IMG/VR virus record: IMGVR_UViG_3300043399_000877
Coordinates: 186,001 to 250,000 of that record
Reading direction: 5' to 3' (one strand)
DNA length: 64,000 nt
The notes under the pieces are model-generated. The model did not search any database. It was not told where the DNA came from and was given only the letters and a program-made list of their open reading frames with translations. This document shows positions 1,636 to 4,119 of the stretch, piece by piece. Position numbers and translations under genes: made by a program. Numbering within the stretch: the first letter of the stretch is position 1; each line of letters starts with the position of its first letter.

Positions 1636-1660
1636 AAGCCCGTTTAACACGGGCTTATTT
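1636..1660 (-). terminator. Rho-independent terminator
   Basis: AAGCCCG-N7-CGGGCTT hairpin followed by a T-run on the minus strand, right at the stop of ORF 1655-1921. Confidence 0.8.
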
Positions 1661-1921
1661 TCCAGAAAGTGTAGCAATAAATTCGTGTTTAGAAAATGTT
1701 TTAAACTCTGATACAGCTTTGTTTAAAATATCCTCAGCTTCTTTCTTATATCTGGGATTTTTTGTTTGAGATTGTTTAACTAGCAGTGAGAAATATTCTT
1801 TTTTAAGACGTTCAAATCTTTTCTGAAAAATAACAATCTGTGGTGCGTAACCGGGATGGTTTTTACGCCATTGTTTTATCGTGCGTTCGTATTCGTCCCA
1901 GGATGCATCAATGTTTGTCAT
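1655..1921 (-). CDS. Hypothetical basic protein (88 aa), probably from a leaderless mRNA
   Basis: ORF has its own sigma70-type promoter, with the ATG 5 nt after the -10 box, and a terminator at its end. Confidence 0.75.
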   Translation of the reverse strand: MTNIDASWDEYERTIKQWRKNHPGYAPQIVIFQKRFERLKKEYFSLLVKQSQTKNPRYKKEAEDILNKAVSEFKTFSKHEFIATLSGK

Positions 1922-1926
1922 GCTAT

Positions 1927-1955
1927 AATATAAAAAAAATAGCTGTTGTTGTCAA
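1927..1955 (-). promoter_or_regulatory. Sigma70-type promoter TTGACA-N17-TATATT, overlapping a terminator hairpin
   Basis: Minus strand: TTGACA (1955-1950), 17-nt spacer, TATATT (1932-1927). Confidence 0.8.
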
Positions 1956-1964
1956 CAGCTATTT
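1932..1964 (-). terminator. Rho-independent terminator (12-bp stem)
   Basis: AAATAGCTGTTG-N4-CAACAGCTATTT followed by a T-run on the minus strand. Confidence 0.75.
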
Positions 1965-1998
1965 CAGTTATTTTACACAGAGAAGTTTTTATTTAGAC

Positions 1999-2261
1999 GG
2001 CGGGTGGAGTAGATTAACAGCTGAGCAAATTGCAAGGTGAACCAGCACCTGTATACAATCCACAATTCACAACCTACAACGATTTGCATAAATCCGGGTA
2101 GCAAAAGACAGTCAACTAAGTTGATAATATAAACCCAGAACACGCAAATTGAATCTTATTTGAATAAGAGTATGACGGTTTCCCATAAAAGGAAAAATAG
2201 CCTTAATCCCATTCTCCACCCAACCGGGTAGTTTCCCTGGATCTCTCCGGGGTATACTACC
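1999..2261 (-). ncRNA. Candidate structured RNA downstream of the DIP1984-like gene
   Basis: Long-range pairings 2002-2009/2214-2221 (GGGTGGAG/CTCCACCC) and 2011-2017/2203-2209; a GAGA-tetraloop hairpin at 2227-2261; small hairpins at 2112-2124 and 2154-2169; no credible ORF. Confidence 0.55.
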
Positions 2262-2264
2262 AAA

Positions 2265-2825
2265 TTAGATTAAGTTAAGATCTCGCAGCGTTTGTTCAGT
2301 CTTGCTGGTAACGCTTATCTCGGTCTTAACGTTAAGTTCAAGAAGTTGATCCTGCATTGCAACTTTGTTCTTCTTGTATGCAGCGAGAGCAACTTTGTAT
2401 TCAGCAATATCAGCTTCATCAAAGATGTTGCTGGCTACTGTTTCGTCACGGCCGTAATAGTCTTCAGTACGGCCCTTGATTTTGCCCAGCTTTCCGACAA
2501 GTACGTCGTTTGCTAAGGCAGGCTCAAGTTTTGCAAGGCGGTTGTAAAGAACAATGTCTTTTTCAAGTCTTGCAAGTCTGGCAAGCACTCCGTCGATTCC
2601 GCTTGCGCTGTTAGCAGCAGCAACTAGATCGCGAATCTCGTACAGAGCATCAAGCAGGTCGGAACGAACCTGCATATTCTGTTTCATTCTGGTCTTTGCA
2701 AAAGCAATCTTTTCAGAAGGCTTTTCAAATTCGTTCATCTTTACTTCCGTAGTCAAATCCAAAGCATTTACTGCTTCGTTAATCACGGCTTGTAGTGCAT
2801 TGGCTTTTCTTAAGGAAATCTTCAT
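2265..2825 (-). CDS. Coiled-coil protein resembling the DIP1984/DUF6847 family
   Basis: 186 aa, helical. It starts MKISLRKANALQ and ends ...MQDQLLELNVKTEI, compared with the family-like ending 'LD..IQELNW.TEL'. GAGG SD and its own promoter. Family assignment is by eye. Confidence 0.6.
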   Translation of the reverse strand: MKISLRKANALQAVINEAVNALDLTTEVKMNEFEKPSEKIAFAKTRMKQNMQVRSDLLDALYEIRDLVAAANSASGIDGVLARLARLEKDIVLYNRLAKLEPALANDVLVGKLGKIKGRTEDYYGRDETVASNIFDEADIAEYKVALAAYKKNKVAMQDQLLELNVKTEISVTSKTEQTLRDLNLI

Positions 2826-2852: not shown

Positions 2853-2880
2853 AATATAGCATCAGCACAGGAATAGTCAA
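2853..2880 (-). promoter_or_regulatory. Sigma70-type promoter TTGACT-N16-TATATT with extended -10 (TGn)
   Basis: Minus strand: TTGACT (2880-2875) and TGC-TATATT (2861-2853), directly after the capsid terminator. Confidence 0.7.
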
Positions 2881-2931: not shown

Positions 2932-4119
2932 TTAGCTGAAGCTTAGGTTTGCAGTAGTGATAGCAACCTTGCCCAGATAGTCTGCTGCGTTACCAAGTGA
3001 CGAAGCAGTGTTAGTCAATTCGACATAACCATAGCGAGTCATGAAGCTCACGACTGGTTCCATGGTTGACGGATCAAGAACAACACCGCTGCTCATCAAT
3101 GGAATGTATGGGCAGTAGAATGCTGGTGCGTCGCTTTCGCTTGCGCCCTTGTAACCGATTAGTACGTCATCGCTAGTTGCATATGTGTTAACATATACTT
3201 TCATAGCGTTGTTTAGAGTACCAACAAACTTGGTGTTAGTTGGGGCTTCAAAAGTACCTTCAGTAGTGCGAGCAAAAGCTGAAGTAGTTGCGCTCTGTAG
3301 GATAGTTAGAGCAGTTGGCGAAACAACAGCCCAGTTACCAGCGCCACGACGTGTACGCTGAGCGATTAGGTTTGATACCTTGTTGATTTGAACAGCTAGA
3401 GCAGCGTGTTCGTCACCAACGAAAGTAGCAGTACCACTTACTGATGCTTGGTCGTAGGTTTCAGCAGCAGCACCGGCTAGGATGCTTAGGCTACCAAGGA
3501 TTTCCTGGTCGATTTCAGCAGTAATTTCTTGTGCAAGAGCAGCCATGATTTCTGCTTCGACGTCAATACCGTGTTGTGCTTGAGCGTCTTGAGCAGCCTC
3601 GAAGGTCCAGCGAGCGCTGAGCTTACGGCTCTTTGCTTCGACTGTTTGCTTCAAGATTTGGATGCTCATACGCTTACCGATCTGACCTTCAAGAGCAGCA
3701 GTAGTGTTAGGACCACGGCTGTTGTAGGTAGCGGCATTACCAGCGCCTGAGTAGCCTTCAGCAATCTTGAATGGGCTTAGTGCTTCTTCACCAGCAGTGA
3801 TTCCAGTTCCGCTGCTTGCCATGCTGTCAGCATAGCGAACACGTAGAGTATGAATCTGTGCTACTGGGCCAGTCATTGGTTGAACACCAACAAGCTCGTT
3901 AGCGATAACTGTTGGCATCACACGGCGGATCACTGGAAGGATCACGCGGTTTAGGGTTGCGATATTACCGGCAGAAGTTGCACCAGCAGTTGCACTTTCA
4001 GCTAGGTACTTGCGAGTATTTTCTAGCGTGACAGACATAACTGCTTTCTTGTTGCCACCGAGGCCTTCAAGAAGTGCGTTTTTAGTCTCCTGCCAGCGAC
4101 TTTCTAATAGTTCTGACAT
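2932..4119 (-). CDS. gp23: T4-like major capsid protein
   Basis: Motifs RRVMPTVIANELVGVQPMTGP, KSRKLSARWTFEAAQDAQAQHGID.EAE, FYCPYIPL and MTRYG. Confidence 0.97.
   Translation of the reverse strand: MSELLESRWQETKNALLEGLGGNKKAVMSVTLENTRKYLAESATAGATSAGNIATLNRVILPVIRRVMPTVIANELVGVQPMTGPVAQIHTLRVRYADSMASSGTGITAGEEALSPFKIAEGYSGAGNAATYNSRGPNTTAALEGQIGKRMSIQILKQTVEAKSRKLSARWTFEAAQDAQAQHGIDVEAEIMAALAQEITAEIDQEILGSLSILAGAAAETYDQASVSGTATFVGDEHAALAVQINKVSNLIAQRTRRGAGNWAVVSPTALTILQSATTSAFARTTEGTFEAPTNTKFVGTLNNAMKVYVNTYATSDDVLIGYKGASESDAPAFYCPYIPLMSSGVVLDPSTMEPVVSFMTRYGYVELTNTASSLGNAADYLGKVAITTANLSFS

Follow-up and report, generated by a model that had tools for sequence, protein, structure and literature searches.

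A covarying structured RNA paired with a gene for a predicted helical dimer in uncultured jumbo phages

Sizeable structured non-coding RNAs that are kept beside a dedicated protein gene are known from bacteria, where OLE RNA accompanies OapA/B/C and Y RNA accompanies Ro60 (Rsr), and where the adjacency of the genes reflects a ribonucleoprotein (RNP). Phages encode highly structured RNAs of another kind, GOLLD and ROOL, which are large and ornate, also occur in prophages and are found near islands of transfer RNA (tRNA) genes; GOLLD env-38 is reported to lie directly after a tRNA-Met (10.1101/2024.12.08.627333). Here we describe a module of one protein gene and one RNA in a 64,000-nucleotide stretch of viral DNA (hereafter the window), which corresponds to positions 186001-250000 of the 381,886-bp jumbo phage record IMGVR_UViG_3300043399_000877 in IMG/VR. 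The module consists of a gene for a 186-aa protein followed by a 267-nt structured RNA (Table 1). An earlier note, made from the sequence alone, had proposed that a protein and its cognate RNA of ~260 nt form an unrecognised module at this place, and the proposal is strongly supported: the RNA covaries, is non-coding, and is inseparable from the gene in every locus retrieved.

The module has features of both groups. As with OLE and Y RNA, a sizeable structured non-coding RNA is kept beside a dedicated protein gene, but no OLE or Y RNA model matches the module RNA, and the partner is a soluble helical protein of 186 aa, predicted to dimerise, rather than a membrane protein or the Ro60 ring. OLE and Y RNA are moreover bacterial, whereas the module is found in lytic-type jumbo phages and not in bacteria. 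With GOLLD and ROOL it shares a phage origin and a high degree of structure, and in many relatives, though not in the window, the module RNA has a place among tRNAs, in some loci directly after tRNA-Met. GOLLD and ROOL are 600-800 nt long and thought to be RNA-only assemblies, whereas the module RNA is ~270 nt long, has an obligate neighbour gene, carries UG heptads, and scores below the gathering thresholds of GOLLD (RF02032) and ROOL. The papers on GOLLD and ROOL describe no fixed protein partner (10.1101/2024.12.08.627333). Neither partner of the module is in any described family, and we regard the module as new, with the caveat that in many relatives its habitat, the phage tRNA island, is also that of GOLLD and ROOL.

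Fold and conservation of the RNA

The strings quoted in the earlier note are all present in the window: GGGTGGAG at 2002-2009 and CTCCACCC at 2214-2221, AGATTAA at 2011-2017 and TTAATCC at 2203-2209, and the two direct repeats CCGGGTAG (at 2094 and 2224) and GCAAATTG (at 2025 and 2144). The 267 nt fold with -89.6 kcal/mol, compared with -66.8 +/- 5.3 kcal/mol in dinucleotide shuffles (z = -4.3), and none of 200 shuffles is as stable. The minimum-energy fold joins GGGUGGAG (2221-2214) to CUCCACCC (2009-2002) and GAUUAA to UUAAUC, so that the long-range closing helix proposed earlier is present in the fold, and it covaries across homologues.

Most of the 80 viral loci that were fetched through the protein have the same layout past the stop codon: UUUGG, a hairpin, ACC-CGG, a purine-rich run, ~200 nt, and a complementary pyrimidine-rich run. 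Seventeen diverse copies were aligned with MAFFT, without fitting to a structure, and on this alignment RNAalifold predicts 34 pairs, 29 of them with compensatory double changes. A covariance model was built without the P1 hairpin, which was checked separately, and has 238 positions and 27 pairs. In the model alignment of 56 distinct sequences 92.8% of the cells pair, versus 72.1% in shuffles (0 of 500 reach this value), and double changes are seen at 24 of the 27 modelled pairs; when the partners are slid by 1–3 columns, pairing falls to 39-54%. By helix, compensatory change is found at 11/12 in helix 1, 3/3 in helix 2, 4/4 in P3 and 6/6 in P4. The sequences beside the homologous genes thus hold a conserved, covarying structure. 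The comparative support is unusually clean, and that a new structured RNA family exists is virtually certain.

The GNRA-capped hairpin that had been pointed out at 2227-2261 (P1) is real, with a GAGA loop, and 50 of 53 distinct homologues have a counterpart of it ahead of the RNA core. Its stem varies among them (GGTAGTT, GGTGGTT, GATGGCC, GGCGGCT, GCTAGTT), and in a 95%-identical relative the loop is GCAA, which is still GNRA.

In the paired columns G-U and U-G cells (148) outnumber A-C and C-A cells (32), which shows that the RNA is read from the gene's strand. A longer unrecognised open reading frame (ORF) was also looked for. A 56-codon ORF overlaps the RNA region in the window (1973-2143, minus strand), but in each of the 56 distinct copies every one of the three sense frames is interrupted by stops, and no hidden ORF therefore explains the region.

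The two 8-mer repeats, to which attention had been drawn as a pair, have separate standings. GCAAATTG, or CAAUUUGC as read in the RNA, belongs to a conserved UUG motif, namely the heptad motif described below as seen on the opposite strand. CCGGGTAG is specific to the window copy and probably a chance repeat, since it is not conserved.

Rfam 15 gives no match at gathering in the whole window, and no family covering the RNA in the loci of 20 relatives; at E <= 10 on positions 1850-2350 there are only chance matches, which lie on the terminator. A 2023 catalogue has 8,495 unnamed structured-RNA candidates from IMG/VR (PMC10690425), and the module RNA may be among these.

Linkage and distribution of the two partners

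Three of the 80 loci end inside the gene, and 77 have enough flank for the RNA to be scored. In all 77 the covariance model finds exactly one match on the gene's strand, as it does in the window, and it finds a single copy in the whole 381,886-bp genome. Of 55 distinct loci, 36 have the RNA 1–5 nt past the stop codon, 9 have a single ORF or tRNA between the gene and the RNA downstream of it, and 10 have the RNA immediately ahead of the gene. As a safeguard against circular reasoning, an RNA-first search was also made, in which an RNA-only pattern was run over the viral collection and the resulting loci were then scored by the model. It returned 14 full-length matches, every one of them with the gene; 10 are on contigs already known, and in all four new contigs the gene is directly upstream on the same strand. 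Both parts are also present on a contig of an Alteromonadales metagenome-assembled genome (MAG) and on a 7,843-nt wastewater contig. A second module suspected on the latter contig was rejected, its loose end being ordinary divergence in the next gene. The joint presence, joint absence and changing order of gene and RNA argue for a functional pair rather than an untranslated region (UTR), and we hold with high confidence that the pairing is obligate.

Two further elements lie beside the module in some relatives, whose loci are given here by number. In one subgroup a conserved ORF of ~139 aa (MKIGLSYSRCVKD...) is located between the gene and the RNA (L028 3574-3993 and L033 3571-3987, among others); neither Pfam nor PADLOC has a match for it. 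In other relatives a second conserved non-coding element of ~330-400 nt, beginning AGACCCCG..., follows the gene (L039 3574-3990, L062 1023-1433, L051 2040-2384, L079 4767-5126, and also L041). The copy in L039 matches no Rfam family at gathering, and the element is possibly another structured RNA. The other flanking ORFs of the relatives have no family match.

The protein belongs to a large family. A word-indexed protein search gave 505 relatives of 184-230 aa, nearly all of them full-length, and an exhaustive profile search gave at least 1,654 clusters (50% identity) at E <= 0.001 and 1,032 at E <= 1e-10. The family alignment has 23 invariant positions, and its members come from freshwater, estuary and wastewater phages with genomes of up to ~380 kb. 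The 186-aa protein is without a match in Pfam (E <= 0.1), PHROGs, NCBIfam or PADLOC, and a sequence search of PDB gives chance matches only. Neither a DNA search nor tblastn matches the module in 50,697 GenBank phage records, and across 185,579 bacterial and archaeal species (one genome each) the single match is the Alteromonadales MAG contig, which is 11 kb long and phage-like. On these grounds the family is essentially confined to uncultured phages, and a family of this size has no curated-library entry for either partner and no carrier among the cultured phages of GenBank. Cultured jumbo phages with a capsid protein 69-72% identical to that of the window's phage are Sinorhizobium phage Phosso, Vibrio phage 2.275.O and the Serratia BF / Pectobacterium CBB group. 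The first two, which are the closest cultured ones by this protein, have neither the gene nor the RNA, beside the capsid gene or elsewhere.

Protein fold, heptad arrays and a possible ribonucleoprotein

AlphaFold2 gives a confident model of the protein (predicted local distance difference test, pLDDT, 92), which is all-helical with long helical hairpins and has two short strands by which residues 169-171 are joined to the N-terminus. Complex prediction yields an elongated symmetric homodimer, with an interaction prediction score from aligned errors (ipSAE) of 0.68 versus 0.00 for the best control; for comparison, 20 of 30 solved homomers attained that mark, as did 1 of 23 monomers. The homodimer runs share at least 94% of contacts with pLDDT of at least 90. 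The invariant residues R6, K7, K112, K115, K151 and K154 fall outside the greater part of the predicted dimer interface and could constitute an RNA-binding surface.

The label 'DIP1984-like' that was given to the protein amounts to a lead at the level of the fold and fails at the level of sequence. PDB entry 3kdq is the top match in all three structure searches (Foldseek, re-alignment, and an independent search of 48,161 chains) and the only full-length one, with E 0.011 and template modelling (TM) scores of 0.42/0.50 by Foldseek, and with 142 of 152 residues aligned at 17% identity, a root-mean-square deviation of 6.3 Å and Z 10.9, where values below ~13 may reflect a common helical arrangement. 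The entry is for an uncharacterised Corynebacterium diphtheriae protein that we take to be DIP1984, a name absent from the title of the entry. The nearest non-self cluster in the ESM Atlas is of 149 aa and mostly viral, and 19% of its members carry PF20935 (DUF6847); it compares with the 186-aa protein at TM 0.55/0.66 and a feature score of 0.91. The module protein is ~35 residues longer than DIP1984/DUF6847 proteins and falls short of the curated PF20935 cut-off of 27 bits. None of 29 family members matches PF20935 at E <= 1, and the PF20935 model finds nothing at E <= 10 in the whole 381,886-bp genome or in five related large records. Because no profile detects the relationship, we treat the likeness as a fold-level lead and not as membership. 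A search of a literature library for functional work on DIP1984, DUF6847 or 3kdq found none.

On the RNA the most unusual feature is a set of heptad arrays (A to C in Table 1). At alignment columns 229, 236, 243 and 250, again at 296 and 303, and likewise at 190 and 197, UG reaches a conservation of at least 95%, with an exact 7-nt period. In L001, L003, L006 and L038, which are without the optional hairpin, arrays B and C form an uninterrupted in-phase track of six units. Four TTG at 7-nt spacing occur once in the 64-kb window (2056-2079), where 0.04 occurrences are expected, and a periodic motif this exact and this rare offers a concrete handle on binding. UGCA within the heptads is self-complementary. 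Separately, four partial matches of 41 nt to the heptad-array part of the RNA were noted (L090 6270-6310, L128 8611-8651, L136 8717-8757, L161 10046-10086); they have identical scores of 31.2 bits and a GC content of 0.29, two are on giant-virus MAG contigs, and they are probably an unrelated TTG-periodic repeat.

Short motifs at fixed spacing are the targets of two bacterial regulators, HutP, whose sites are UAG triplets with 4-nt spacers and hence a 7-nt period, and TRAP, whose sites are 11 (G/U)AG triplets. The module RNA likewise presents a short motif in unpaired RNA, UG(Y) every 7 nt in 4+2 and 2 units. However, TRAP and HutP are beta-rich ring oligomers that act as attenuation regulators of bacterial operons, whereas the module protein is modelled as a helical dimer, matches neither the MtrB nor the HutP family, and is encoded beside tracks that are embedded in a large closed fold. 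The likeness is one of RNA motif alone, and the module may work like TRAP or HutP without being a member of either family.

Gene and RNA are joined in a metatranscriptome (run X17), in which a 603-nt contig at a depth of 56, 95% identical to the window, covers positions 2002-2592, starting within the gene, passing the stop codon and extending through the RNA. The contig ends at 2002, the last base of CUCCACCC, where it is joined to the 13 letters GCTCTTCCGATCT, which are the terminal part of the Illumina adapter. The contig points to co-transcription of gene and RNA and to molecules that frequently end at the foot of the closing helix. In relatives, up to 27 tRNAs are found in 6.5 kb around the module, and some abut the RNA: a tRNA ends directly at P1 in L024, L039, L051, L062 and L072 (tRNA-Met in L024, L051 and L062), while in L002 another tRNA begins 12 nt past the RNA. 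Since these tRNAs abut the RNA, their processing would free it from the transcript.

The linkage pattern, the closeness of the RNA to the stop codon, the predicted dimer and the parallel with TRAP and HutP lead us to favour, by a modest degree, the reading that protein and RNA form an RNP in which dimers read the periodic UG track. The module would be a self-contained unit of promoter, 186-aa gene, 267-nt RNA on the same transcript, and terminator. The elongated dimer would bind the RNA as it is made beside it, most likely on the periodic UG tracks, and the RNA would be cut back to a discrete molecule whose end is at the closing helix, with flanking tRNAs supplying the processing sites in relatives. 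The RNP would then act in trans during infection, possibly in the tRNA or translation take-over functions that are encoded nearby in related phages. A bolder and distinctly tentative version is that the module represents a phage RNP class of its own, in which DIP1984-like dimers would sit in register on the 7-nt UG track of a closed ~270-nt scaffold and, with tRNA arrays and GOLLD, reprogram or protect host translation. Including its own promoter-like and terminator-like sites the unit is shorter than 1 kb, and it can be synthesised and tested without the uncultured phage.

Several points weigh against the RNP reading and the evidence gathered for it. The adjacency of gene and RNA could come from shared regulation or a shared pathway instead of binding. 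The protein is not basic, with a median isoelectric point of 6.0 over 256 family members and a net charge of ~0, which speaks against simple electrostatic RNA binding. The homodimer result expresses the confidence of a model and is no measurement. The X17 contig is an assembled contig of a relative; DNA carry-over is possible, and contigs are no proof of an RNA end. Finally, the 56-sequence alignment was fitted to the model structure, which favours pairing, although the unfitted alignment, with fewer sequences, agrees.

The strongest alternative, which we consider unlikely though well short of negligible, is that the RNA acts alone, as proposed for GOLLD and ROOL, and that the protein is a co-expressed helper in its folding, stabilisation or processing, or a functionally related product that does not bind it. 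The setting of the module is consistent with this, as the modules of relatives are in tRNA islands and GOLLD is found within 3 kb in 7 of 20 relatives' loci (L029, L049, L055, L060, L065, L072, L080). The window's phage itself encodes GOLLD (187 bits; G000:C1:11513-11975, minus strand) at a distance of 176 kb from the module, and GOLLD is present in three of five other large records, a co-occurrence that is frequent but not obligatory. The self-complementary UGCA of the heptads could mediate RNA-RNA contacts, and the charge of the protein fits an RNA that needs no binding partner. Yet the linkage is too tight for a mere neighbour, with both parts on the same strand in all 77 protein-first and all 14 RNA-first loci while the order changes, and the absence of such a fixed protein partner sets GOLLD and ROOL apart (10.1101/2024.12.08.627333). 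The position of the module beside tRNA arrays and GOLLD in many phages ties it to the role of large non-coding RNAs in phage tRNA islands.

It is quite improbable that the RNA is a cis-acting UTR of the gene's own mRNA, serving as a stabiliser, terminator or autoregulatory operator. Such a UTR would account for the RNA starting just past the stop codon in 36 of the 55 distinct loci, for the terminator-like U-run after the closing helix in many relatives, and for the X17 contig that joins gene and RNA. The position is not fixed, however, and the full structure is kept upstream of the gene in 10 loci and beyond an ORF or tRNA in 9. A fold of ~270 nt with four covarying helices and invariant periodic motifs also goes far beyond what stabilisation or termination would require, a canonical terminator of its own follows the RNA after 33 nt in the window, and the flanking tRNAs imply that the RNA is released from the transcript.

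A decoy is very improbable. Here the UG(Y) units would act as a sponge, either for the neighbouring protein, by the logic of type III toxin-antitoxin systems such as ToxIN, or for a host RNA-binding or RNA-cutting defence factor. The module does resemble ToxIN in being a phage-linked transcription unit of a protein gene and a repeat-bearing non-coding RNA; it has at least eight copies of a short motif in unpaired tracks, and it is phage-borne, accessory, and absent from the closest cultured relatives. But the ToxIN antitoxin is an array of ~34-36-nt repeats upstream of the toxin, behind a terminator, whereas Tandem Repeats Finder reports no tandem repeats at a score of at least 30 in 1950-2300, which leaves no array of ~36-nt repeats, and in 45 of the 55 distinct loci the module RNA lies on the 3' side of the gene. 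The protein is an all-helical predicted dimer without a ToxN/Kid-like fold or a PADLOC family match, and the module is essentially absent from bacterial genomes (one phage-like contig in 185,579 species). The suggestion that the RNA is antitoxin-like accordingly finds no support. That the element is not an RNA at all is almost certainly wrong: TTG heptads could in principle bind proteins as DNA sites such as iterons or a packaging or replication site, and a short ORF does overlap, but the compensatory changes preserve Watson-Crick and G-U pairing and show a strong strand bias that DNA sites would lack, and besides the stops in every frame, a reading frame could not accommodate a 7-nt period.

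Genomic setting of the module

All genes around the module are on the minus strand, and the module follows three genes, the last of which encodes the major capsid protein (Table 1). The proposal of an independently promoted gene with a terminator after the RNA is in keeping with a promoter-like site, a consensus match only, and a terminator-like hairpin that were located on the two sides. Between the 186-aa gene and the downstream 88-aa gene there are 343 nt without a credible gene. Relative L006 has the same order of terminator, promoter, gene, RNA and terminator. The 64-kb window contains no tRNA or transfer-messenger RNA (ARAGORN), and its module adjoins the capsid gene.

Table 1. Features of the module and its surroundings in the window (coordinates of the window)
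Feature	Position	Strand	Remarks
Upstream genes, in transcription order: prohead protease, scaffold-like protein, gp23-type major capsid protein		-	
gp23-type major capsid protein gene	2932-4119	-	Pfam Gp23, E 8e-100
Terminator-like hairpin of capsid gene	2911-2885	-	
Promoter-like site of module	2853..2880	-	TTGACT, 16-nt spacer, TATATT, TG preceding second hexamer; consensus match only
Gene for 186-aa all-helical protein	2265..2825	-	predicted homodimer
Structured RNA, 267 nt	1998..2264	-	read 2264 -> 1998; begins 1 nt past stop codon
P1 hairpin	2227..2261	-	GGUAGU/ACUACC, inner stem capped by GNRA (GAGA); conserved UUU before it
Closing helix, 5' strand	2200..2226	-	purine-rich; CGGUUGGGUGGAG, then GAUUAAGGC
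Closing helix, 3' strand	1998..2021	-	pyrimidine-rich; GCU, GUUAAUC, CUCCACCCGCCG
Closing helix, pairing	2226-2214 with 2009-1998		continues 2209-2200 with 2021-2011
Two small variable hairpins			after closing helix 5' strand
Internal domain	2084..2147	-	P3 and P4
P3	2144-2147 with 2084-2087		
P4	2133-2138 with 2094-2099		encloses small hairpin and heptad array A
Heptad array A	2100-2111	-	inside P4 loop, two units
Heptad array B	2054..2080	-	four UUGYNNN units
Optional hairpin			present in window copy, between arrays B and C
Heptad array C	2024..2035	-	UUGCAAU UUGCU, two units
Terminator-like hairpin and T-run	1936..1965	-	end of transcription unit; 33 nt beyond RNA
88-aa gene downstream of module	1655-1921	-	without family match

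The next gene has a promoter-like site of its own (1955-1927), and the -35 hexamer of this site, TTGACA, sits in the loop of the terminator-like hairpin at the end of the module, so that the signals for termination and re-initiation overlap (1927-1965, minus strand). The 88-aa gene shares a WRK(N/E)HPGYAPQ motif with the ORF that follows the module in L001 (3832-4080), and synteny therefore reaches past the module in the nearest relatives. Further downstream, a sub-threshold copy of the freshwater-2 RNA motif (RF02980; 29.6 bits versus a gathering score of 49.9) is found at 1533-1591 on the minus strand, preceding a gene for a 129-aa protein (1146-1535, MGRP...). Full-score copies of RF02980 are present in L006 (3962-4029) and L017 (4435-4507) at the same place, before a homologous MGRPI... 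gene.

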